A stretch of 64,000 nt of DNA from the NCBI RefSeq assembly GCF_006345805.1, contig NC_042999.1, positions 43,090,001-43,154,000 on the forward strand, read 5' to 3'. Below the pieces are notes generated by a model. The model ran no database searches. It was not told where the DNA came from and worked only from the letters and a program-made list of their open reading frames with translations. Both the position numbers and the translations under genes were made by a program. Of the stretch, positions 3,046 to 62,109 are shown piece by piece. The DNA comes from Octopus sinensis. Its lineage: Eukaryota. The stretch's first letter is position 1. Each line of letters begins with the position of its first letter.

Positions 3046-4606
3046 TCAACAGTGTTTGGACTTTTCTAAGCAATTTAGCTTTAGCCTGTTACCATAGAAA
3101 CAGGGCTAAATTTAGAATTGGTTTTTCACTGAGACTCCACCTCCTCCTCTCGCCCCCCCCCCTTCTCTCTCATTGGCACATTCTCGTCATCTAATTGATA
3201 GGAAGGAAATAAACCAACAGCATGGCACTGCAGCACAACATTTTTCACAATACCACCAGGCATGTGGCTAACAGACACAGACTGTACGTAGTACAATACT
3301 ACACAATTAGTTTAAATTGTTGTCAAACGATGTGCTTGTATGAGAGAGAGTTTGTGTGTGTGAGAGAGAGAGAGAAAGAGAGAGGGAAGGAGGAAGAGTG
3401 GTGGCGTATACTCTCGTAGCATATGTTTTGAGAGTGTGTATGTCTGAGAAAGGAGAGAGAGAGAGCATTTCTGAGTGAGTGAAAGTGATGGAGTGCACTC
3501 TTATAGCATGTTTTGAGTGTGTGTGTGTGTGTGTCTGAGAAAGAGACAGAGAGAAAGAAAGAGAGGGAGCATTTATGAGTGAGTGAGTGAGTGAGCGGAT
3601 GAGTGTAAGTGGTTGGGTGCACTCATTCTCTTGTGTCTGCATGCACGTGTGCAAGCGTGTGTGTGTGCATGAATTTTTAATATTACACGCATATATTTAT
3701 GCATATACTAGTACTATAAATAATAGATGCTTGATAAGCCTACAAGCTTAGATGCACAATGATACATACAACTATACATACATATTTATATATATAAACA
3801 CAGACATGCAGGCAAATATGTATATATATATATATATTTATGTATCACCATCGTTTAACGTCTGTTTTCCATGCTAGCATGGGTTGGACTGTTTGACCAG
3901 GGTCTGGGAAGCCAGGAGGCTGCACCAGGCTCCAGTCTGATCTGGCAGTGTTTCTACAGCTGGATGCCCTTCCTAACGCCAACCACTCCGTCTGTGTGTG
4001 TGTGTGGTGTGTGTGTGTGTGTGTGTGTGTATGCACACCTATAAACACATGCATGCATGCATAAGCACAACAACAAACATATATGTGCACATGCACACAC
4101 ACACACACATTATTTTGATAATATAATTATTTTAGACAAGGCCTCAATAAAATTGAATACAGAAAGGGTAAACTGTCCTAGGACCGAAAACCCAGATTGA
4201 AAGGCAACACACACCCACAGCAAATATGGGAGACAATTCTAGACATGTTGCAGTCTTATTTAGACATCATCAGTAAAGCATAGACCTCATATGCACATAT
4301 ATGCATACATACATACATATATATTTTTTTTTGTCAACAAAGCTAGGAAACAATCACTAAATAAATGTATGATATTTATAAATTGGTACAAGCGAAAACT
4401 AATTACTCAGAGACACCATACGCATAAAAAAAGACCAAAAGAAGTGATAATTAATGCAGTGATATATTACTGAGAAGGTCTAGTACTAAAACATGTTTGG
4501 ATTATCTGCCATATTTGCTGGGGTTATTTAAATAACATTAATGATGCCTTGTGAATATATTTGTTCTCATTCTGAATTCTTAATGCATAGACATACACAT
4601 ATATTT

Positions 4607-4672
<66 letters not shown>

Positions 4673-5542
4673 GGACTCTCATATCGTTAGAGGGTTCTAC
4701 ATGTTCATGCTGAACAACTACACAGAGGATTTGTTTTATAGTGACCAAATGTTTGTGTATATATAAGCTCACTCTTTTCCTCAAATCAACATAACCTGTA
4801 CAGGTACACGACACAGAGCAACATGAAATGAAGTGTTTTGCTCAAGAACACAACGCGTCATCCAGTCCAGGAATCAAAACCACAATCTTGCACATCCTAA
4901 CCACTAAACCATGTGCCTTCACACACACACACATATATATGCCTTAAACATTTAAACCAGCCATATCCGGCCCAAATAAGCTACTTGTTTTATGTTCTCG
5001 CCAGCCAGATGCAACCTATCACAGCTACCCTTCAATGTCATTCTAAAAATATACAATCATCATCATCATCAAATTTTCAAAGCTATGAGATAATGCATGA
5101 TTAATTAAATACAAGGTAAGCGAAAAAGCATTACATCATCATCATCATCATCATTTAGCATCCGCTTTCCATGCTAGCATGGGTTGGACGGTTCAGCTGG
5201 GTTCTGGGAAGCTAGAAGGATGCACCAGGCCCAGTCTGATCTGGCAGTGTTTCTACGGCTGGATGCCCTTCCTAATGCCAACCACTCCGTGAATGTAGTG
5301 GGTGCTTTTTACGTTCCACCGGCACAGGTGCCAGACGGGGCTGGCAAATGGCCACGGTCGGATGGTGCTTGTTACATGCGACCGGCACGGGGGCTAGGCG
5401 AGGCTGGCAATGGCCATGATCGGATGGTGCCTTTTACGTGCCACATTTGACAAAATAATCTGAATGCTAAATGTTTCACACAGTGGGACTGAACTCACGA
5501 CCATCTGATCAGGAAGCAAGTTACTCAAGCATACAGCTACAC

Positions 5543-6864: not shown

Positions 6865-9141
6865 ATTTATATATCCACCAAACTGGCTCCTGTGCAGGTG
6901 GCACATAAAAAGCACCCACTACACTCTCGGAGTGGTTGGCATTAGGAAGGGCATCCAGCTGTAGAAACCTTGTCAGATCAGATTGGAGCCTGGTGCAGCT
7001 TCCCGGTTTGCCAGTCCTCACTCAAACTGTCCAACCCATGCCAGCATGGAAAGCGGACGTTAAACAATGATGATGATTATATATATATATAGTTCAAATT
7101 TACAGGCAGATGAGGGAACAACAAACGTATGTATTAGTTTGACAACTGGGAAGAATGGAAGTCTTAGACATTTCGAGCCCATGCTCTTCAACTGAAAGGA
7201 TTGATGGAGGGGGATATATGTGTGTGTGTGTGTATATATAGTCGTGTACATACTAAAGTTAACTTCAGCGCCAAATGACTTGGGATTCACTGCCTCATTG
7301 CAGACACACCTGGTATCTACTATAGTTGGGTAATGCCATGTAAGTGAAGTCTGGTAATGGAAGTATGTGTGTGTCGGTCTGTTCTCATCCATACTTTGTT
7401 TTCTTGACTGCATACAAGTTATAAATCAAGCACCACCATTCATAGAAGCAGTGTTGCTTGTTTACAATATGAAAGTATGTCTTGGCAATTGGCTGTTTGG
7501 TAAACTGAAGGAATTATTACCTAGCATGGAAACAGGTGAAGGTCAGCACAGAAAGAGTACCTGGCCACAGAAAATTCAACCTCAACGAAACCTCGTCTGA
7601 CCTATGCAAGCATAGAAAAGTAGAATGTTCAGAGCCAAAACGATGATAAATTTTTGCAGAACGTAGAATTAAGTGTTCTATCCAAGGAACTCAAGCATGT
7701 AAGATGTGTATTGGTATTCACAAACATGACTTGTGTGCATGGATTATAGAGTCCTGATTATGATGATGATGATGACAATGAACAACAAAGAAAAATTCTT
7801 ATGAAACCTACATTCTGAAAGAAACCGTTCCAAATCAAAAGAAATATTCTTGAATAAGAATATTAAGAACAGAAAGATTATTTATTCAACAAAATAAATA
7901 AAGTAAATAAAAAAAAATCAAATTAAATAAACAAATATTGCTGTCTGACCCTGCCCTGTCAAACTCCTGCCCTGGTTTAGCTCTTGAAGAATTAAGTTGG
8001 ATTCCAAACCGAAAGTTTTGTTTGGTTCATTAAACATTCCATAAGAAGCTTAAAAGCAATATATGTAGAAACTGTTTAAAATTCAAAGACATTCAAACTA
8101 GAAACAGCTCAAATGTCAATTCCATTGGTTCAGTTCTGCTCCAAGTTGAAGTGCATTAATTTTGTTCTCAGTGCAGACGTATGCACGTCTTCATTACTAA
8201 AATTAACAAAACAATGACCAACAAACACCAGTAGGAACTACTAAAGCACTTTAGAATCACAGAGAAAAGGAAATTGTCTTCTAATGCAGACTTTTATAGA
8301 GGGAAAATGAGAAATGGTGTTAAGTTTTATGACATTCTCAAGGGTACTTCACACCAGCTGAGCAATCTGAATTAGCTTTAAATAGATTTCAATACATAGA
8401 GCTTACCTGTTACTTAACAATGCTTATCTGTAAGCACTGTTAAGTAACAGGTGAGATCAGGTATGAAGAAATAACACTTCTTCCTCCTGACTATACCAGA
8501 CCAGACAAATTTGTAGATTTTATTAAAAAAAAAAAATTTTTTAGGAGTGAAAACCAAGCTACAACTTCATGCTGCAGTAAAATTTTTGACCCTGAATGTC
8601 TTTGTAAAACAAAATTACCAAGTATTACAATGACGAACAATAAAATCACTGTGCTGAAAGGTCATGGCTGTAAAGCTTTTTAGGCTTATCTGTTATGAAC
8701 AGGAGGTTCATAACAGATTAGTGGATATTATTTCCTCTGTATAGTGCAACAGTACTGTTGGCTGCAGGTTTTCAACAGACCAATCACAAATCTAAGAAGG
8801 AAAGAGTAACAAGAGGTTGTCTAACTCAGAGCAAAGGTTTTTTTTTTTTTCAAAGAGTAGCAGTTGTCATTAATGTTTACATACTTTAATCTTTTTGTTA
8901 ACCATATTTCTGTTGAGATGTTCTATGCTTCCTTCAATTAATTTTTAAATATAACAAAGAATTTAGTAAAACAACTTATCATTAAGCTGGTGTTAGGAAC
9001 ATAAATTGCGACTAAGGTTTGGTGGAAGATTTTAATTCAGACCTTTTGAAAACAAGACTTGTGTACTACAGAGCCAGATGCAGTTTCAGCCAGACAGGTA
9101 TCAAAAGGATTAAAGAGGGAGAGAGAGAGAGAGAGTGAGAG

Positions 9142-21778: not shown

Positions 21779-22244
21779 GCACACACACAAACACCCTGCA
21801 ACATGCATACAGATATACAAAAACATATATATCATCATCATCATCATCATCGTTTAGCGTCCGCTTTCCATGCTGGCATGGGTTGGACAGTGCAACTGGG
21901 GTCTGGGAAGCCAGAAGGCTGCACCAGGCCCAGTCTGATCTGGCAATGTTTCTACGGCTGGATGCCCTTCCTAACGCCAACCACTCCGTGAGTGTAGTGG
22001 GTGCTATAACATATTTTTACTTATATACCTATAAAACACACATACACGTATATACATTACGCACACACATCATCGACATTATATGCATGTGTATATAAAT
22101 AAATATAAATAAACACACAAACACATACCCGTTAACATACATAGCCAATATTTACTCACATATCTACAATACACACTTATACATGGATACATGCACACAC
22201 ACACATATCATATCATCAGAGACATATATATTCTTTTTTTTCTT

Positions 22245-22829: not shown

Positions 22830-23185
22830 GATGTGCACACACACGTGTTTCAGTTTTTCTACCTTGTATATCTATGTATCTATCTGTCTCACAGCTTATA
22901 ACTTTTTCTTCATCCATTTTTCTACATCTACACTTCCTACCCACTCTCCACTATATGTAACATATATTATACACAAATTTATATCATCATCATCATTGTT
23001 TAACGTCCGCTTTCCATGCTAGCATGGGTTGGACGGTTCAAGCATGGAAAGCAGACGTTAAACGATGATGATGATGATGATAATATATGTTACATATGCA
23101 CATACATACACAAATTTATACACACATAAATGTATTTGCATATATAAACAAACACAAATAGATACACATGATGGATGGATGGATG

Positions 23186-34081: not shown

Positions 34082-35213
34082 ATGTATATATGAACATAAT
34101 TATGTATACACATTCATGTATATATACACTCACACACGCACATATATACACATAGGAATTTCATTTTCTTACACCCTTTTATAAACTGCACAGGCACAAA
34201 TGAATTCCTGAAGTAAAAAATCCAGTGGCATATCCCCGCCATGCTGTTGATGACATCAGGAGACCGAATACTGTCAACAGGCTTTAAACAGCACACTACA
34301 AGGTGTGTACCTGGATATAAAATTATAATACACCCACACACACACTGGGGGTGTACTTGCCAAGCAAATTATAGTGACCTACTGCACTGATTAGACAAAG
34401 CACCAAGGAAAGTCTAAGTAGAGCAGCTAGCACACACACAGTACACACACACACATATATATATAATATATATATATGATATAATAGATTACATCATTAG
34501 CTTAGCTAATGACGTCACTAGGCTGGTTTTACACCCTTAAGTAGTTGGTAAGTAGTCACAGTCAGTTGCTCCTTGGTGTGACGACAGTGTGGAGCAGTGA
34601 ATGGGTGGGGTGAATAAAACGGAATTAAGACGTTGGTTGTAGTGTGTGTGTGTGTGTGTGTGTTTTGGTCACAAAAGTGGTGGTGGTGGTGGCGATGGTG
34701 AGGTTGGTGGAAAAATTAGCTATAATCAACGATGACGATGTCAATGTGTGTAAATCAACCTTCATCAAACCAAAAAAAAAATCTATAATAAATGGCTATT
34801 CCAGCCGTGGCCATCCTTCCTTAAAGTAATGTAGATCTTTATTCTTCAATGTTTCCTTACACCTAAGACGGTGGGAGAACAAAATTCGAAGGAATTCTTG
34901 GCTGCTGTTTCTAGCGTAACGAGCGACTACGTTGGAACTCCCGTCGTTCGTTCTTGTTTAGTCCCGGGCCAGGCCAGGCCAAGCAGATAATATGATCAAA
35001 GCCATTCCAGCAGTTGTCACCTAGCATTTTTACCCGGAACCATTATTAGCCAACGTGTTTTTCTTTCTTTCTTCTCTTCTCTTCTTTTTTTTTTTTTTTT
35101 GACCGATTGATTTGAAGGAATCCTGCTATTATTTCCAGCAGGCCGGGTGACTATGTTGGAGAGAGAGAGAGAGAGGTGTGTGTGTGAGAGAGAGGTGTGT
35201 GTGTGAGAGAGAG

Positions 35214-35252
<39 letters not shown>

Positions 35253-35285
35253 GTGTGTGTGTGAGAGAGACAGAGAGAGAGAGAG

Positions 35286-35346
<61 letters not shown>

Positions 35347-35523
35347 GATTTAATGGCCATAGTGAAGTTGCCGAACAATAACAATAAATGATGATGGCGG
35401 TGGTGGTGGTGGTGATGCTATCGGCTGCTGACAACGATTATGATGGTGATGAGATACATGTCGATTGTTATTCATGAAGTTAGGTGATGATGGCGGTAGT
35501 AAGACTGGTAAAGGTGGTAGCGG

Positions 35524-35810
35524 CGACGGGGATAGACGTAGTGAAGGTGGCGGCGGCGACGGGGATAGACGTAGTGAAGGTGGCAGCGGCGACGGGGATA
35601 GACGTAGTGAAGGTGGCAGCGGCGAGGATAGACGTAGTGAAGGTGGCGGCGGCGACGGGGATAGACGGTGTGAAGGTGGTGGAGTCGGGGACAGACGTAG
35701 TGAAGGTGGCGGCGGCGGAGATAGACGTAGTGATGGTGGCGGCGGCGGCGAGGATAGACGTAGTGAAGGTAGCGGAGACGGGAATAGATGTAGTGGTGGT
35801 GGCGATGGAT
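35524..35810. repeat. GC-rich 33/30-bp minisatellite, 9 units
   Basis: Unit gacggggatagacgtagtgaaggtggcggcggc. Unit lengths differ only by multiples of 3. Confidence 0.95.
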
Positions 35811-36501
35811 AAGAGCAGCAGAAATGTTAAGGCAAATAGCGCTAGCAGCAATTGTTGGTGGTGGTGGTGGTGATGAGGCCGGCGGCAATGGTAGCAAAGG
35901 AAGCTAGAGGCGCGAGGTGTATTAAGTGGTGAATTGATCCGACTTAATGATATTTAAGACAGATTTAAACAGGTAAACTGTACTAATGAAACACACACAG
36001 AGACACACACCTTATGAGTGTGTATATGTTTGTATAAACAGATTGGATAAACTCTACCACCAGCTGACGCAAAAATAACAATTTAACATCCGTAATGACC
36101 GAATAAAAAGGATACACATACATACATACTTACATACATAACACCATTAACACGTTGTCTAAAACATGACAAAAATAGAGAGAGAGATCATTCGTTTGAC
36201 TAACAGACATATAGATATATTTCGGCTAACAACAACAAAGGAGGAAACAATACGGCTATTTTGAGTTATAGAAATCACAGCAAAAAAAAAAAAAAAAAAG
36301 AAATAGCCAAAGCAATGAAAACAAACCGCAAAAATAAACTGCTGTGGAGCTGTTAACGCAGTTGTCGATTATTTTTCCTTTCTACACTATATATATATAT
36401 TTTTTTATTATTATTGTTTTTCTAACCTTAGAAGATACAATAACAGTAAATAGATATACATCTGTAATACCGAAGCTAATGCACATATATAACATAATAC
36501 A

Positions 36502-37962
36502 ATGGATACGAACAGCAATTTAAATCAATATCTCACTATCAGAACCTACGTGAAAAAACAAGCATTAAGGAATATTAACAGCAAGAATGAGGGAATTAGC
36601 GGACAGCCGATCGAAGAAATGCCTGAACCAAACGAAAACGGCACCAGTGTTCAGAGTGGCAGTAAAGAAAATCTTTCTGTAATCTTGAACAACCGAGAGT
36701 TCAGCCATGGGATAAAAAATGGATGTATCGATGTGTTGATGAATAACAACAAGAATAAGCTATTAGAAGTCAGACAACAATTTGGACAACAAAAAAGGAT
36801 CGAAGACTGCTCTAACCTCGAGAATAGTGTCCATGCCGATGATGATGATGGGGCGAATGATAGTGATGTGGGCAGTGACGAAGAACAAGATCTTACTTTC
36901 AGTGGAGAAAGCCAGCAAACATCAGAAGGGGAGGACAAAACTACGTATTACAGTACCACGAACAATGCCGAAACGAGTTCGATAACCGATGAGACAGACT
37001 TGACTCTTCAAGCAAACAGTGATATGGAAGAAGACTGTGTAAACTTTACAGACGACAATGAACACTGGTATGTGGAAGAACCCACGTGGAAATATGTGTG
37101 GAAGCCAGATTCCGATAACGACAAGAAGAAAGGCGAATATGTCTGGACCAAAGTTAAAAGCGAAAACGGCGGCAAGGAGATTTATTGGGGAAATATACGA
37201 AATATGGAGGATGAATGGATACCGCAAACAGTTCCTGTTAAAGAGAAAAAAAGCTGGGTGCCGAAACTAATAGCAGGGAAAGAACATGGCGAAACTGTCT
37301 GGTACTACATGATGCCATACATACCCAAAACAGCTGAAGCTAGGAAACGAACATTGGAACACATTCCACAACTAATCAAAGATAAAGGGGCAAGCAGTTG
37401 GTTTTCTCAGTTGAAGTTTACGAAAACGGGAAATAAAACCGTCTGGTACTGCAAGCTAACACCGGCGCCTGAAGAACCAGAAGATAAAAAGAGCATTTCC
37501 TCAACAACATCATCATCATCAACATCAACACGGATTAATAGTAATAATGGTCCAATGTTGGTTGCTGCTCCTGTAATACTTCCCCTACCAGAAATTTCAG
37601 CTGCCAAGGAAGAAAAAACCAAAGATAAAAATTCTAATTTACCGGAACTGAGGAAAATAGCAGGAAAGCCGAGTCAATGGTTTTCAAAGTTAATCAAAGA
37701 CAAAGACAGCACCCAGGAACCAAAATGCAACCAAGCAACCAATGTTTCGTCAATACACGAACCTGTTCCTCGCAAAGTATCAGAAGAGGTAAGACACAAC
37801 AACTGCGATGCTAAAAAACACAATAAGCTTCAGTTACTGGAAAATATAACACCTTTCTCGAAAGAAACAGGCTTAAAAAAGAAAAAAACACAGACAGACA
37901 GTAAGAGTGTTTGGTACAAAGATGTTCTCCAAGAACCAGACGATTTCCATGACAAAGAATAA
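36502..37962 (+). CDS. Single-exon 486-aa uncharacterised protein with an acidic tract and a Trp-rich repeat region
   Basis: Uninterrupted 1461-bp ORF of non-repetitive sequence. The start context is good (acaATGg) and there is an in-frame TAA 12 nt upstream. A candidate acceptor lies at 36430-36431, a candidate donor at 35973, and AATAAA at 38412-38417. No signal peptide or TM segment is visible and I do not recognise a family. Confidence 0.8.
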   Translation: MDTNSNLNQYLTIRTYVKKQALRNINSKNEGISGQPIEEMPEPNENGTSVQSGSKENLSVILNNREFSHGIKNGCIDVLMNNNKNKLLEVRQQFGQQKRIEDCSNLENSVHADDDDGANDSDVGSDEEQDLTFSGESQQTSEGEDKTTYYSTTNNAETSSITDETDLTLQANSDMEEDCVNFTDDNEHWYVEEPTWKYVWKPDSDNDKKKGEYVWTKVKSENGGKEIYWGNIRNMEDEWIPQTVPVKEKKSWVPKLIAGKEHGETVWYYMMPYIPKTAEARKRTLEHIPQLIKDKGASSWFSQLKFTKTGNKTVWYCKLTPAPEEPEDKKSISSTTSSSSTSTRINSNNGPMLVAAPVILPLPEISAAKEEKTKDKNSNLPELRKIAGKPSQWFSKLIKDKDSTQEPKCNQATNVSSIHEPVPRKVSEEVRHNNCDAKKHNKLQLLENITPFSKETGLKKKKTQTDSKSVWYKDVLQEPDDFHDKE

Positions 37963-38411
37963 CGCACATACTCACACACACAAATGAAGGGCACTCGCGC
38001 ACACACACTCACAAAACTGAAAGATGAATACACACACAGACACTGCACTTGACTTAGCACTTTGCCTGTCCTGCATATCATATGTGACACCCAGTACATA
38101 TTTATCTAACATTCTTGTATCAGATTAAATTGGGACTTCTGAAAGGAAAACTTTATATTACTCAGAACGTGTGAAACAAACTAAAAGTCTGAAAACAAGC
38201 GAGGAAGTTATGGGCAAACTTAAGGATATGCCCTGGATGGGCAAAGGGTTAATGAATCGTGCTCTGTCTCCCTGGTATGGAAAGTAAACTAATCATGAAA
38301 TATCAGTTAAGTAGAAAAAAAAAAAGAGAAACTGCCTTAGCCAATTACATACATGCAAAAAAAAAAAAAAACTCCCTATTTTGTCACTTTGGTTTCAAAA
38401 AAAAGTCTGTA

Positions 38412-38417
38412 AAATAA
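38412..38417 (+). promoter_or_regulatory. Candidate polyadenylation signal for the 486-aa ORF
   Basis: AATAAA about 450 nt after the stop codon. The hexamer is common in AT-rich DNA. Confidence 0.3.
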
Positions 38418-38652
38418 AAGCCATTTTCACACCACACAAATGCTCCCTGTCGTCTGGCATGAAACTGTTCATATTTCACTATTTTAAATTTTAGTTTCAT
38501 GTACAAAACAAACCAAAACAACATTTACGTTGATCTCATGTATTTCTGAGTTCAAATAGCACAAAAAAGAAAAAACACAAGAAAAATCTTTAAAAAAAAA
38601 AAAGAGAAAAAAAGCCGCAAAATCATGGAATTACATTTTCCAACCATGCCTT

Positions 38653-42323: not shown

Positions 42324-43322
42324 CAGTGTTTCTCAACCTTTTCACCCTTGTGTAAACTTTAAGATAAATCACATGTCTCAAGGAACCTCTGCACAAAAAA
42401 TTATAAACCATATCTTTCTCGTGTTTTTGCATCATAGTTCATGTGGTAAATATCATACATATGTATGTACATATGTATGTATGTATGTATGCATGTGTGT
42501 GTGTACTCTTTACTTGTTTCAATCAATTAACTGTGGCCATGCTGGAGCACCGCCTTTAGTCGAGCAAATCGACCCCAGGACTTGTTCTTTGTAAGACTAG
42601 TACTTATTCTATTGGTCTCTTTTGCCAAACCGCTAAGCTAAGTGCTGTTGAGGGGACAAATACAGATACAAACACACACATACACATCATCATCATCATC
42701 GTTTAACATCTGCTTTCCATGCTAGCATGGGTTGGACGGTTCAACTGGGGTCTGGGAAGCCAGAAGGCTGCACCAGGCCCAGTCTGATCTGGCAGTGTTT
42801 CTACAGCTGGATGCCCTTCCTAACGCCAACCACTCCGTGAGTGTAGTGGGTGCTTTTTACAAGCCACCGGCACAAGTGCCAGATGAGGCTGGCAACAGCC
42901 ACGATCGGATGGTGTTTTTTACATGCCACCGGCACGGAGGCCAGTCGGGGCGGTGCTGTCAAAGACCACGTTTGGATGGTTCTCTTACATGCCACCGGCA
43001 CTGGTATCACAACCACAATTTCCATTGATTTTGATCGATTTCGATTTCACTTGCCTCAACAGGTCTTCACCATATATACGATGGGCTTCTTTCAGTTTCC
43101 GTCTACCAAATCCACTCACAAGGCTTTGGTCGGCCCGAGGCTATAGTAGAAGACACTTGCCCAAGGTGCCACACAGTGGGACTGAACCCAGAACCATGTG
43201 GTTGGTAAGCAAGCTACTTACCACACAGCCACTCCATAAATTATATCATGAAATTAGCATATCTCATTCTTTCTCGCAGAACCCCTAGGAACCTTTCGCG
43301 GAAACAGGGTTGAGAAATACTG
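42324..43322. mobile_element. hAT (Charlie-like) MITE interrupted by nested SINEs
   Basis: TIRs CAGTGTTTCTCAACC and GGTTGAGAAATACTG. 8-bp TSD CTTTAGAG / CTTCAGAG. Confidence 0.85.
42686..43066 (-). mobile_element. SINE-like family B with (GAT)n tail
   Basis: Conserved block tggttggcgttaggaagggcatccagc and 3' end gcatggaaagcggacgttaaacgatgatgat. Other, mostly 5'-truncated copies at 1-30, 627-770, 3847-3990, 5135-5445, 6880-7080, 19020-19200, 21835-22005, 52130-52420 and 61680-61945. Confidence 0.8.
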
Positions 43323-46658: not shown

Positions 46659-48081
46659 CTCACTCAATAATAATAATAATAAAGCTGGACTCTCCTGTTG
46701 GAGACAATGCATGAGTGTTCAGCTTTTGCTGAATGATCTGCACAAATGTTTATAGTGATCAAATCACATTGTTAGCTCACTCTCTCCATCAAATCAATGT
46801 TGTCTGAACAGATGCACTGTGTAACATGCATCAGGCGTCGAAGTAATCACAGTGCAATGTAAAAGCGTTTTGCTCAAGAACACAATGTGGTCTAGGAATT
46901 GAAATCACAATCAAGTGATCATGAGTGCAACACCCTAACCACTAAGCCATGTATCGTCAGTTACGATATATGATGTGTGTGTGTGTGTGTGAGAGAGAGA
47001 CAATATATCACAGTATCAAATCATCAATGTCGTAAATGTTGGGTTCAAATTTTGTTGGGATCAATTTTTTTCCCTTTCATCTTTCAGATGTTGATAAAAT
47101 AAAGGAGCAGTCAAGTACTGGGAGTGATTTAATTGATTATGCATCTTCAAATTGGCTTTGTGCCAATGTAAGAAATTATCATTATTAATTACTAATTAAG
47201 CAGTAGTAATTATAAATAATTTGACTAAATAACTTTCATAGTTTTCTTTTTCTACATTTTCAGTTCAAAACAAAAGGAGGTCAACTTTACCTTCCATCTT
47301 TCTGAATTTGTAGCTGATTAACACCAGATCATTCCAGGGGTTAATGGAGTAGGCTCATGATCAAAAAAGCATTCCAACCATGACTGACTCCTCTTTTATT
47401 CAGACAATATAGCAATGACCATACTATTCTCTTTTAAGATGCTAGAAAATTACTTTGAAGAGGTTTAACTTATTTCTAACATAAAATTTACTATATAAAA
47501 GTCTCCTTTTACTGCTGGAATTCATTAAAAAAGCAGCACTCATGTAGCTCATTCATCAATTCTAGCTAGTTGTTAAGCAGTGAGGTGGGATAAGCACACA
47601 CACACACACACGACAGGCTTCCACACAGTTTCCATCTACCAAATCCACTTACACAGTATTGGTCAACCTGGAGCTTTAATAGAAGACACATGCCCCATGT
47701 GCCAGACAATAGGACTAAACCTGAAACTACAGAGTTGCAAAGCAAGCTTCTTAACTACACAGCTAAGCCTGTGTTTGTAAGCCATGGATTTTTTTCATTT
47801 GTTTTGTTGTTTTAAGTGTGCATTTAATACAGGAATATGAAGTTGAAACTGCGAGTTTAAATTGCCAACCATCTCAACCAACAAATATGAAAACTCAACA
47901 CCCCCCCCACCACCACCAACTAGGGTAACAAAAAAAAAAACCCCAGAAAAACAAGGCCATTCTAATGAGCATAAGAGTTTCAGTGTTCTTCAAGGCAGGA
48001 AAAGCAAGGAACAAGACAATTTACGATGAACATGGAATTATAAATTAGAACACGAAAAAAAAAAAAAAAGAAAAGACTTAC

Positions 48082-48233
48082 TATTGATTACTATTGGAGT
48101 TTGCTTGAGCTGTCTGATTACCGGCCAGCATCTGTAATTGATGGTAAGGGTGGTATGGCGTTTTACGTAGGGCCTGGAGCAGGTTGGGTCGATAATCAGG
48201 ATCAATGCACCAGAGAGAACCCTTGCCAATACT
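48082..48233 (-). CDS. FoxN2/3: Internal coding exon of forkhead box N2/3 (C-terminal wing of the forkhead domain plus downstream residues)
   Basis: Minus strand reads gtttctgttctctttccttttcAG|AGT ATT GGC...AAT CAA TA|GTAAGT. The exon is 152 bp, phase 0 to phase 2. It translates to [50 protein letters not shown], which matches the FOXN2/FOXN3 signature [25 protein letters not shown]. No other exons of the gene were identified in the window. Confidence 0.93.
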
Positions 48234-48800
48234 CTGAAAAGGAAAGAGAACAGAAACTATTTAATAACAGTAAATCTGTAGTAATAATTGGTTAAGATAA
48301 TTATCAAACAGTTGTTGTTGCTGTTGGTGGTGGTGCTGTTTATCTAAGGCTATGATCAATGGGATTGGAACCATTATCATCCCATGTTTCATGCTGTCTT
48401 GTATCAAAGTGTATGTTATTCATTTTTAAAGGCAATATATATGATTGAGGGAGCTTTGGCTGCTACATCTAGCAGATTGTGTGTGTGTGTGTGTGTGAGT
48501 GAGAGAGAGAGAGAGAGAGATTTAATCAATTCATAGACCAGACTGGCACCCTTTCTCATTTTTTCAAATAAGACCACCCTGAAGGATTGCTTAGAAGCAC
48601 AAGGCAATGATATATAAGTCTGCTGGTTTATTGTGTTTCCACAGCATGAAACTAATAGTAGCTCATATTTAAGTACTGAGTACATTAAATGATATTCATT
48701 TCTCACTGGATGAGTACTCTATTTATTTATTCATTTTTGGTGATCCTACCAATAACAGAACAATATACTATATACAAGTGGCTTTGGGGTAAAAGAAAAT

Positions 48801-52110: not shown

Positions 52111-53819
52111 ACAAACACTCTCCTTGTCATTTAATGTCTATCTTCCACACTGGCATGGGTTGGATGGTTTGACAGGAGCCAGTCTGGTAGAAGACTACAC
52201 CAGGCTTCTGTGTCTGTTTTGGCATGGTTTTTACAGCTGAGTGCCCTTCCTAACACCAACCAACCCGCAGAGTGGAGTGAGTGCTATTTATGTGGCAACA
52301 GCATAGGTGAGATCAACTTTGGCAAGGTTTTTACAGCTGGATGCTTTTCCAAACGTCAACCACTTCACAGAGTGAACTGGATGCTTTTTATGTGGCACCA
52401 GCAGGGTCACCAAGTAACTTGTAAGACAAGGAAGTTTGAGAGGGGAGGGGGCATTACAAGAGGTGGAAACTAAAAGTTTGTCATATGTGTGTGTATTTAT
52501 CCATTATTCATTTCATCCTCAAATAAAGTTTTAGGTTTTGGTTAACAAAAGGTTGATTGTTAAATTTATTGACAATATTTTAAGTTTACAATTCAAAATG
52601 ATCACCCTATGCTTTCACCATAGTCCTTAATCTTTTCTCAGCTAAAGCTTGAATAAAGGGTAAATGTACACACCACGCCTGGTGTGCACACACACATACA
52701 CACATCTTTTTCCCAGGTTGGGGAAAATATCACTTCACTTGGAAACAAGTAAGATTTGGCAACAGGGAGTGCATCAGACCAAGAAAAGAGGAAGAAAAAG
52801 ATCAAGACTGCCATACAAAGACATGTTGTAAGCTGATCTCGGGGTGTTGATCCTTATAAAGGAGATGATAAATAAACACAAGTGGGAGAGGACCTGTCCA
52901 ACCTAGCAAGCATGGAAAATTGTAAAATGATGATGTCAGTGATGGTGATGAGTGCGCGTCTACCAGCAGAGGAAACCTCTACGTAGTCACTTGTCCTACT
53001 AGAAATAGTAACCGAATTTTCTCAAGAAATACTAATGTCTTAAAATATAAAATAAAAAAAAGAAAAAACATTGTAGCTTTTGATAATCAAAAAGGTGAGA
53101 TGGTCACAGCTGGAATGATAGCTTGATCAAACAAGGCTCAAGACCTAAAACAATAACCAACAGTAATAATGTATTTCCGCTCTGATGAAACTGTTTTCAA
53201 AACACCTGCATTTCCTTTTCCACAAATCACAGTCTTAACAAGAGGACAGGATTTCTATCTACTTTATCATCACATCTAACTCACATTTGCACAGTTTAGG
53301 GCTCATGTTTTCAGAGATATATTTAGATTTTAACTACAAATCCAGCAACAATATGCAATTTTAAACATCGTAAATCTCTATTAAGCACTACTTGCCTTCA
53401 ACACATTATAAAGCCGTCACAAGCTCACTACTAACTAGATGGATTTATTTTTGGATGATGTTAATAAAAGATACTTTAAAGGAGAGGATAATGATAAATG
53501 TGGATAACTAAAACATCATCTTGCCAAATAGTACTGACATGTGAAAATGAAAATTAAAAAGACAGCACTTCCAAAATTGAACTCTTTTCATAACCATCAT
53601 CCTCATCGTCATCGTTATGCCAACTTTTTCCATGCTGGTACAGGATGGATTAGATTTATTAAGGTAGTACACTACCTTAATAAAACTTGGTTTTACAGGT
53701 AAGATATTTTTTTATTCACTGGTTTTCACATCAAAATCACAAGTTACTGGACACTGTTTATGGGAAGGATGTAAACAAACATCACTGCTACATAAGTGAC
53801 ATCAATGTAAAGATGCATA

Positions 53820-60540: not shown

Positions 60541-62109
60541 GAGAGATGGTACAGAATTATTTCAAAACTGCAACCACACCAATATCACCACATCCATCAA
60601 ATGCACTTTTGTTGCAACCACATAGCCAACACCATCCCTTATTGTTGCTGCCACATCAAATAGATGCCAATGTCGAGCATAGCACACTACCACATCTCTG
60701 CCAGCAATAAAACTACCATCACCATCACATCCACCTCTTGTTGCACGACAATGAATCCAAAAGATAAATGAACAACAACCGTCACAGCACACAATCAGTC
60801 ACAGTATGAATGTACGTGTGTGTGTATGTGTGCATGCGTCATGACACAGAATATGAGGGAAGACGGTAGGCCACATACGTGAAGAGCTTTTATATTGACT
60901 CTTGAGGTGGCAAAGGGAGGTTATGAATGGTTTGACATATAGAAGAGGACAGAGAGAGAGAGAGACTGGGTTTATCAAAAGAGAGAGCTAGAGAGATATA
61001 CTGAATCATATATATATATAGAAAGAGAGAGAAAGAGAGCAGTGACTGTTAAGGCTTAATTAAAAGACAGTAAAATGGCAAAACAATTTTTGTTTAGCAT
61101 TCAAAAGAATATTGGCCATTAAAACCTCTCTCTTTTAGCTATCTATCTATCAGTTATTCATGCCTCTGGAACACATATTTATAATTAAAAGGAAATTAAA
61201 TTTCTTTCATTTCTCTTCTCCGTGGGTCTCACCTCACTTCACATACACACTTGTCAGAGAATGGAGAAACATTTTAGTCCCCCACCCTCTCCCTCTCTCA
61301 CCCATACATACTTTCCATTCAGAGATCTTAATGTAAACTCTCTTTCTCTCCCTTCTCCACACTCACAAACTCTAAAGCCCCTCTCTAACAAGTGTGCATA
61401 TCCTAGATATGTATGTACACACATGTACATCCTTAAACTTACCAGACAGAGGTCTTCATGTAAAGTTGCACTCACATTTACATCTGTACTCTTGCTAGAC
61501 AAAGGACTTAAGATAGCCTCATATCCATAGAGGTGCACACATGCACATACGTGCGTGTGTGCGCTCACTCACACTCACAGAGGCCTAAAACTAGTCATCA
61601 ACACCAACTGAGTCATCAAAAATGCCTTAAGTCATCAACGTAAGAGAAATTTTTGTTTTGTTTTATTTTATTTTCTGTTAGTTTTTACACTGCATCCAGT
61701 CCACACTGCAAAGTGGTTGGCATTTGGAAGGTCATCCAGCTGTAAAAACCATGTCAAAACTGACCTCGTCTGTGCTGTTGCCACATAAAAAGCACTCGGT
61801 CCACCCTGTATGGTGGTTGGTGTTAGGAAGGGCATCCAGCCGTAAAAACCATGCTAAAACAAGACGCAGAAGCCTGGTGAAGTCTTCTACTTGGCCAGCT
61901 CCTGTCAAACCATCCAACCCATGCCAGCATGGAAGGTGGACATCAAACGACGATGATGATGATAAACCCATTCAGACAAAATAGGTCTAGCACTGTGCCA
62001 AAAGGTAGAAATCAGAAACAAACTGGGAGTACTTAAGATGTCTCAACAAGAACAAGCTAAAGGGGTTTGTAAGCCAGCACTTAGAGAAGTAAAATCCATG
62101 TGGACCGTT

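Follow-up and report, generated by a model that had tools for sequence, protein, structure and literature searches.

A conserved cephalopod gene with a tryptophan-rich core and an internally duplicated 48-residue unit

The one long open reading frame (ORF) in a 64-kb stretch of the Octopus sinensis genome (contig NC_042999.1, positions 43,090,001–43,154,000; hereafter the window, in whose own coordinates positions are given) encodes a protein of 486 amino acids (aa). Comparison with five relatives indicates that it is a genuine, single-copy, single-exon protein-coding gene, and that it belongs to a family found, by sequence searches, only in cephalopods and without detectable relatives elsewhere. 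What the family conserves is a basic core of ~135 aa, rich in Trp, Tyr and Lys, within which a 48-aa unit is tandemly duplicated. We give this account of the identity and anatomy of the gene (a cephalopod-restricted gene with a Trp core and an internal duplication) a probability of about 80%. So far as the databases and literature that we searched show, the family, the domain and the repeat are undescribed; for the gene itself, public databases already contain a prediction without annotation from each of two species.

An intact, conserved single-exon gene

The ORF runs intact from ATG to TAA, with the whole coding sequence (CDS) in one exon (Table 1). An initial annotation of the window had singled it out as the only long, complex ORF in 64 kb, and so it proves: the second longest ORF has 173 aa, and those that remain are mostly read-through of microsatellites and minisatellites. 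At the stop-codon frequency of the window (0.054 per codon), ~3 × 10−7 open runs of 487 codons are expected in six frames of this AT-rich (~37% G+C), microsatellite-laden eukaryotic DNA. The in-frame TAA just upstream rules out a 5′ extension of the CDS in that frame, and the start codon has the context acaATGG (A at −3, G at +4). Downstream, an ATTAAA at 38124–38129 lies 3′ of the ORF. The AT skew of 0.31 (A over T) at positions 36001–38000 is restricted to the ORF interval and arises because the coding strand is rich in codons for Lys, Asn, Glu and Asp.

Relatives were sought in a library of 5.8 billion clustered proteins and, by an exhaustive HMMER profile search, among 1.84 billion representatives. 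The two libraries together yielded five, which brings the family to six sequences with the window protein; the profile search recovered only four family members. The closest relative is an ‘uncharacterized protein’ of Octopus bimaculoides (A0A0L8I9I0; 481 aa, 91% full-length identity to the window protein), followed by an octopus-like sequence from sequencing runs SRR11869391 and SRR11869384 (477 aa, 83% identity) and by ‘hypothetical protein Ahia01_000935200’ of Argonauta hians (550 aa, 50% full-length identity). Two divergent members, P0004 (500 aa) and P0005 (582 aa), share 55% identity with each other and ~52–54% with the window protein over the core. The exact sequence of the window protein is absent from the protein collection. 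A full-length alignment had recovered all five orthologues in a word-indexed protein search; the same type of search with a 143-aa alignment of the core (A4) returned zero matches, known orthologues included, and is uninformative and was not used.

The species-named members are all cephalopods, namely incirrate octopods (Octopus and Argonauta), and P0004 and P0005, judged by their divergence, probably come from other coleoids. No family member was found among viral, prokaryotic (bacterial or archaeal) and JGI metagenome contigs. The proposal that the gene is lineage-specific is thus borne out by both protein libraries, whereas the term orphan has to be narrowed: there are no relatives outside the family, but orthologues exist, and A0A0L8I9I0 is already held in UniProt as uncharacterized. 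Both A0A0L8I9I0 and Ahia01_000935200 match the window protein in architecture, in their 12 Trp and in having a single-exon CDS, and neither carries an annotation, a domain or literature. Literature searches with orthologue accessions, and with those of the corresponding sequencing runs, found nothing, and a topical search retrieved no description of such a protein.

An uninterrupted one-exon CDS is present in every relative for which DNA was available: the Argonauta contig (L001), the 81-kb contig that encodes P0005 (L005) and three short contigs (L002–L004). An in-frame stop lies 6–54 nt before the ATG in L001, L002, L003 and L005. This agrees with the earlier description of the gene as intronless: the CDS is a single exon preceded by an in-frame stop in the window, and equally in Argonauta, in another octopus and in two additional contigs. 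The contig L005 (ENA ERZ21867824, contig ctg104187l) is of animal origin and carries an intact orthologue; it belongs to an assembly that is classed with metagenomes, and presumably represents host DNA; directly after its gene, a prokaryote-style gene caller placed a spurious 252-aa ORF of (CA/TA)n sequence.

Ratios of nonsynonymous to synonymous substitution rates (dN/dS; Nei–Gojobori method) point to purifying selection that is strongest in the core. Between the window and the 83%-identical octopus sequence (dS 0.23), dN/dS is 0.26 overall, 0.19 in the core and 0.31 in the C-terminal tail; between the window and Argonauta (dS > 1, near saturation), the corresponding values are 0.21, 0.11 and 0.47. 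Across comparisons the ratio ranges from 0.19 to 0.26 overall and from 0.10 to 0.19 in the Trp core. No relative carries a frameshift, and none of these values (0.1–0.26) is near 1. Six intact sequences with dN/dS well below 1 are the mark of a coding gene.

The position of the gene is also shared. In Argonauta, the annotation gives a stand-alone single-exon gene between two opposite-strand genes, and the terminal coding exon of a Forkhead gene, which we take to be FoxN2/3-like, lies convergent to it ~9 kb downstream (L001:20728–20915); the matching exon in the window is convergent at ~9–10 kb. An upstream exon of the Forkhead gene was not found within the 64-kb window, nor was the Forkhead anchor found within 10 kb of the divergent orthologue in L005. 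Logan contigs were considered as evidence of transcription and rejected, since their collinearity with the genome and their microsatellite ends make them inseparable from genomic assemblies.

Organization of the protein

Regions were drawn from the six-way alignment and from composition (Table 1). Only the core is kept across all six sequences, with a mean column identity of 76% and 55 invariant positions. It has a pI of 9.35 and contains 10 Trp, 8 Tyr and 24 Lys or Arg residues; nine of the ten Trp are invariant, W196 being the exception. The Trp of the whole protein are at residues 189, 196, 200, 215, 229, 239, 252, 267, 300, 315, 393 and 471, in agreement with the initial placement of 10 of 12 within aa 189–315.

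The tract that precedes the core is acidic (pI 4.05, with 26 Asp or Glu residues versus 1 Lys or Arg) and is probably disordered. Each of the six proteins has such an acidic stretch directly N-terminal of its Trp domain. In P0005, the most divergent orthologue, it is expanded (aa ~35–150; L005:10100–10450) by a lineage-specific tandem array of ~11-aa acidic units, EGEESTNT(E/V)(T/I)W, which contributes 8 extra Trp and brings that protein to 20, compared with 12 in all other members.

The N-terminal region is near-neutral and is kept among octopods only, not in P0004 or P0005. Its octopod-conserved stretches are NQYxTIxTYV, ENLSVILNN and KNGxIDVLMNNNKNKLLE, and two low-confidence helices are predicted in it. 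At the other end, aa 322–486 form a long, low-complexity tail, probably disordered for the most part, that is rich in Ser/Thr, Lys and Pro and evolves fast save for a few islands. An acidic tract, a Ser/Thr tract and a KKKK motif had been noted as flanking the repeat; all three are present, but KKKK is kept only within Octopus.

No signal peptide is apparent (the first 30 residues have a mean Kyte–Doolittle score of −1.1), nor is a transmembrane segment: the highest 19-residue mean is 1.41, in the Pro-rich aa 350–368, and is lower in all orthologues. With neither a hydrophobic N terminus nor a segment of transmembrane length, the default reading is that of an intracellular soluble protein, and a cytosolic or nuclear location would follow solely from these two absences.

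Table 1. Features of the gene and its surroundings in the 64-kb window
Feature	Position	Strand	Basis or remark
In-frame TAA	36490..36492	+	12 nt 5′ of start codon
Complete single-exon CDS, 486 aa plus TAA	36502..37962	+	Orthologues; dN/dS 0.19–0.26
N-terminal region, aa 1–104	36502..36813	+	Alignment; AlphaFold2
Acidic Ser/Thr-rich tract, aa 105–187	36814..37062	+	Alignment; composition
Basic Trp/Tyr/Lys-rich core, aa 188–321	37063..37464	+	Alignment; dN/dS 0.10–0.19; AlphaFold2
N-terminal half of core, aa 189–231: EHWY, then KYVW, EYVW, EIYW	37066..37194	+	Short strands predicted
Repeat unit 1, aa 238–285: EWIPQ..., SWVPKL, GETVWYY	37213..37356	+	Alignment; hairpin predicted
Repeat unit 2, aa 286–333: EHIPQ..., SWFSQL, NKTVWYC	37357..37500	+	Alignment; hairpin predicted
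Putative degenerate first half of third unit, aa 380–402, LPELRKIAGKPSQWFSKLIKDK	37639..37707	+	hmmsearch; hhalign; orthologue conservation
C-terminal motif SKSVWYKD, aa 467–474	37900..37923	+	Conserved in six sequences
First canonical AATAAA 3′ of stop codon, candidate poly(A) signal	38413..38418	+	Sequence inference
Terminal coding exon of Forkhead gene, convergent with ORF	48081..48236	−	Context anchor; matching exon in Argonauta

A duplicated 48-residue unit

Residues 238–285 and 286–333 align without gaps, with 16 identities in 48 positions and a BLOSUM62 score of 66. Shuffles of one copy score −42 ± 15 (z = 7.4), and 0 of 100,000 reach 66. The pair is also the best off-diagonal segment in the whole protein (offset 48, score 70); the best matches in shuffles of the whole protein score 37 ± 4.7, with a maximum of 54 (n = 300). 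The observed score thus exceeds that of every shuffle, and the repeat is not a chance alignment. Profiles of the two units, each built from six sequences, align over 40 columns with an hhalign probability of 96.4% (E = 1 × 10−9). The initial annotation had reported 13 identities in 31 aligned residues, a count that is correct for the first 31. The repeat module that it described is real, but belongs to a wider conserved domain of ~135 aa.

Both units occur in six of the six members, which places the duplication before the deepest sampled split. Their consensus is (E/K)(W/H)IP(Q/K)-x8-(S/R)W(V/F/I)x(K/Q)L-x3-K-x3-4-(K/E)T(V/I)WY(Y/C). The Trp of the protein fall in two conserved contexts. The first, [KE]x[VIY]W, accounts for 6 of the 12 Trp in the protein (KYVW, EYVW, EIYW, ETVW, KTVW and KSVW) compared with 0.3 expected in shuffles, a statistic that is indicative only, because the pattern was derived post hoc from the same protein. 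The second, (S/Q)W(V/F)x(K/Q)L, surrounds W252, W300 and W393. Three of these six copies of the first context, KYVW, EYVW and EIYW, lie ahead of the units, in aa 189–231, and are spaced 14–15 aa apart, which hints at a strand motif of ~15 aa as the core's older building block.

The annotation had also pointed to partial echoes of the repeat further along the chain. A hidden Markov model (HMM) of the 12 unit copies finds a weak extra match at aa 386–402 in every orthologue (independent E = 0.004–0.12) and a still weaker one at the C-terminal (S/A)(V/I)WY. When the octopod alignment of LPELRKIAGKPSQWFSKLI (aa 382–400) is compared with the first half of the unit profile, hhalign gives a score of 23.3 (E = 2.6 × 10−5); column-shuffled controls score 8.5 ± 2.3 with a maximum of 17.3, and 0 of 200 reach the observed value. 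The sequence comparisons therefore support aa 380–402 as a degenerate first half of a third unit. The C-terminal (S/A)(V/I)WY(K/E)D is kept in all six sequences, SVWY being too short to test alone, and SKSVWYKD may be the displaced second strand of that unit. In P0004 and P0005, IIPKLI, GW(F/L)PKL and A(V/I)WYED follow one another in the same order with longer spacers. The two strands of the third unit would then have been split by an insertion of ~65–70 aa. Of the proposed echoes, the first thus stands above its controls; the second is conserved, and its place in a third unit is conjectural.

Predicted structure and searches for known folds

AlphaFold2 predictions separate the core from the remainder of the protein. 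In the full-length model (five-sequence alignment), the mean predicted local distance difference test score (pLDDT) is 36 and everything outside ~aa 199–325 falls below 50, which is consistent with disordered flanks and no proof of them. Modelled alone from six sequences, the core reaches a mean pLDDT of 63.9 and a predicted template modelling score of 0.62. Two long β-hairpins are predicted, at aa 255–261/264–271 and 300–309/312–321 (pLDDT 69–81 by block), and they coincide exactly with the pairs of W-strand and TVWY-strand in units 1 and 2. A helical stretch (aa 278–291) is predicted between the hairpins, and short strands at the YVW motifs. This medium-confidence model of the core, with very low confidence elsewhere, agrees with the suggestion of a Trp β-hairpin module in a disordered scaffold.

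Searches for known families and folds came back empty. Against Pfam, the window protein and all six members gave only DUF5435 and DUF5424 at E ≤ 10, at 12 bits versus cut-offs of ~27, and we regard both as chance. A single-sequence search of the PDB matched geopilin (E = 0.46) on the acidic tract, a compositional match. The core profile matched nothing in the PDB, and the sole match of the repeat profile, a PQQ methanol dehydrogenase (7o6z_A), was not significant (E = 0.86). Foldseek placed no neighbour of the core model at E ≤ 1 × 10−3 in the PDB (best template modelling (TM) score ~0.28) or in BFVD, with TM scores of at most 0.33 overall. Matches of the full-length model to kinase N-lobes (E > 0.1, TM score < 0.1) are meaningless, that model being too poor. 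Given the medium quality of the core model, the Foldseek result amounts to ‘no recognisable fold’ and not to a proven new fold. The description of the repeat as unrecognised is upheld by the lack of a Pfam, PDB or fold match, and the same searches matched neither a known family nor a transposable element.

Alternative explanations

The account given above leaves room for alternatives that differ in what they would change. It is rather unlikely, although the best supported of these, that the CDS is intact as described while the gene has one or more upstream non-coding exons or is transcribed within a neighbouring unit. A polypyrimidine tract followed by AG lies ~70 nt 5′ of the ATG (36410–36431), but the AG is not conserved in the octopus contig that is 88% identical, in-frame stops directly precede the ATG in five DNA copies, and the Argonauta gene is annotated as stand-alone and single-exon. 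In any case, such a structure would touch the untranslated region only and not the protein.

A second alternative bears on the novelty of the core, which might be a highly diverged member of a known β-rich family (a WW- or SH3-like sheet, a pair of PQQ propeller blades, or a hairpin repeat of the choline-binding or MORN type) whose ancestry divergence and the shallow alignment would conceal. The 48-aa unit and its G-[KE]-x-[VI]-W strand do resemble the hairpins of propeller blades, the only PDB match of a profile, below threshold as it is, falls on just such a hairpin, and a model of medium quality makes the Foldseek negatives weak. We nevertheless consider this origin unlikely. The only Pfam matches are to two unrelated DUFs far below their cut-offs, the WW domain fails on both profile comparison and Trp spacing (see below), two or three units are too few for a propeller, and no intermediates were found among the 1.84 billion proteins.

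Alternatively, the protein might not fold at all and instead be a block polyampholyte, acidic (pI 4) then basic (pI 9.4), with Trp and Tyr as ‘stickers’ through which it self-associates or forms condensates, in a loose parallel to other aromatic-rich structural proteins of cephalopods. Segregated charge, clustered aromatic residues, very low pLDDT over ~70% of the chain and the restriction to cephalopods would all fit. Against this stands the constraint on the core: its Trp, W196 apart, are invariant in both position and identity across six sequences, as are many of their neighbours, dN/dS is ~0.1 and the hairpins are predicted consistently at pLDDT 70–81. Invariance, low dN/dS and hairpins together argue for an element that is folded or specifically recognised rather than for compositional stickers, which makes this explanation improbable.

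That the ORF stems from a mobile element or a virus, or arose as a retrocopy of a parent gene with introns, is very improbable. A single-exon CDS in an intron-rich genome invites the idea, as do A-rich tracts upstream (36282–36299) and downstream (38310–38372 and 38590–38615). The Pfam search, however, detected no transposase, reverse transcriptase, integrase or capsid domain; there are no long terminal repeats, terminal inverted repeats or flanking direct repeats besides microsatellites; tblastn gives a single match in the window, and each species has one protein cluster in the libraries; and the position is syntenic in Octopus and Argonauta. Neither sequence nor fold searches found a viral or prokaryotic relative (none in BFVD at E ≤ 1 × 10−3), and the protein libraries, of 5.8 billion and 1.84 billion entries, contain no paralogue that could be the parent of a retrocopy.

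A chance or decaying ORF without function, for which one might cite the absence of the gene from the annotations of some library species, is excluded for practical purposes by the expected number of such runs and by six intact sequences with dS up to > 1 and dN/dS of 0.1–0.26.

Proposed function and significance

Returning to the gene as a cephalopod-restricted one with a Trp core, we can outline how such a protein might work. The domain is assembled from two kinds of short strand motif, [KE]x[VIY]W together with (S/Q)W(V/F)x(K/Q)L, and its best-defined part is the tandem pair of 48-aa units (IPQ linker, W-strand, turn and TVWY-strand), each predicted to form one long β-hairpin. The Trp/Tyr hairpins could then pack into a small β-sheet domain that acts as a binding module, and its net positive charge, many Lys and exposed aromatic residues would suit an anionic or aromatic-cage ligand. 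That ligand might be a nucleic acid, a stretch of protein that is phosphorylated or acidic, or the adjacent acidic tract of the protein itself, whose position is kept in all members and which might act within the molecule as an autoinhibitor or regulator. The arms, if disordered, could be tethers or regulated linkers. A Trp-hairpin module that binds an anionic partner is a tentative proposal.

More doubtful is a specific evolutionary history for the 135-aa Trp/Lys core, in which it would be a new fold or domain that arose de novo in the coleoid ancestor, first through repeated duplication of a Trp strand motif of ~15 aa and then through duplication of the 48-aa hairpin unit, and whose gene has since persisted, as one copy with one exon, for a cellular function peculiar to cephalopods.

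Several points weigh against these proposals or bound the account as a whole. The binding function is read from composition only. The core model derives from six sequences and has medium confidence, which makes the lack of fold matches weak evidence for a new fold. A ‘coleoid-wide’ range is suggested by divergence (core dN 0.38, versus 0.12 between Octopus and Argonauta), and Nautilus and other molluscs were covered only through the predicted proteins in the libraries. Finally, the short Logan contigs that bear orthologues may be genomic reads and not transcripts.

The novelty is confined to the level of family and domain, because no relative or fold neighbour was found, and does not extend to a new mechanism. 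Should the core prove to be a new Trp-hairpin domain that folds independently, it would show in compact form the birth of a domain through internal duplication in cephalopods, a lineage known for genomic novelty, and its age can be dated because every known member has both copies of the repeat. At 135 aa, soluble and easily expressed, it would then provide a tractable entry to cephalopod-specific cell biology as well. The value of the gene is that of a clean, testable example of a conserved lineage-specific domain formed by internal duplication. The practical significance is modest, since taxonomically restricted genes are common and nothing points to a function, and will stay so until expression and partners are established.

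Other features of the window

Upstream of the gene, a G+C-rich minisatellite at 35483–35804 comprises ~10 units of 30 or 33 bp resembling GGCGGCGACGGGGATAGACGTAGTGAAGGTGGC, with (GA)n/(GT)n tracts flanking it at 35150–35345. It produces spurious ORFs of 115–141 aa on both strands, as well as the peak of G+C content and GC skew at 34–36 kb. A dispersed repeat of ~150 bp has at least nine copies in the window, on both strands (627–772, 3844–3990, 5134–5289, 6930–7080, 21831–21986, 22983–23041, 42685–42837, 52130–52277 and 61812–61963), and several copies also occur at the Argonauta locus (70–90% identity). It is probably a short interspersed element (SINE)-like repeat common to octopods, and it contains no tRNA (ARAGORN) or known RNA family (Rfam); Rfam and tRNA scans of the full window were likewise empty.

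Comparison with known systems

One point of comparison is the WW domain, a small β module of ~35–48 aa built around Trp that often sits within otherwise disordered proteins, and the strand motif G-K-T-V-W-Y-Y resembles the WW strand G-K-x-Y-Y-Y. The Trp of the units are spaced by 13 and 15 residues, in contrast to 20–23 in WW domains, and the terminal W-x-x-P is missing; none of the six proteins contains the pattern W.{19,23}W..P, Pfam WW gives no match at E ≤ 10, and the 12 repeat copies align to WW with an hhalign probability of 0.1% (against an alignment of five WW members). Reflectins provide a second comparison. Their genes are typically single-exon, and the proteins carry repeated [M/F]-D-x5-M-D-x5-M-D-x3/4 motifs and have much Met, Tyr, Arg and Asn but little Lys, Ala, Ile or Leu. 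Like them, the window protein is restricted to cephalopods, has repeated motifs containing aromatic residues and lacks a signal peptide. It differs in composition (Met 1.6%, Lys 11.1%, Ile 4.9%, Leu 5.8%, the content of Ala, Ile and Leu being normal), and the reflectin motif [MF]D.{5}MD has zero matches, with one MD dipeptide per protein. The early view that the protein is neither a WW domain protein nor a reflectin is therefore supported by Trp spacing, regular expressions, hhalign and composition alike.

PQQ-type β-propellers share a unit of ~45–50 aa with a turn-G-[KE]-x-[VIL]-W strand, but need 4–8 blades, compared with the two full units and one degenerate unit here, and neither a Pfam match to PQQ nor a Foldseek match to a propeller was obtained. 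Short linear Trp motifs were also considered and set aside by eye: the conserved Trp contexts are unlike those of the W-acidic (kinesin light chain), LIR (WxxL), GW/WG and AP2 WxxF motifs. A further comparison is with the orphan genes of coleoids. The genome papers on octopus and squid report hundreds of lineage-restricted genes, and the gene described here shares with these its restricted range, its uncharacterised status and its low-complexity flanks. Compared with orphan genes in general, it is unusually well conserved, with a core dN/dS of ~0.1 and 55 invariant positions across a deep divergence, and it is further set apart by a clear internal duplication and a domain that is predicted to be ordered.

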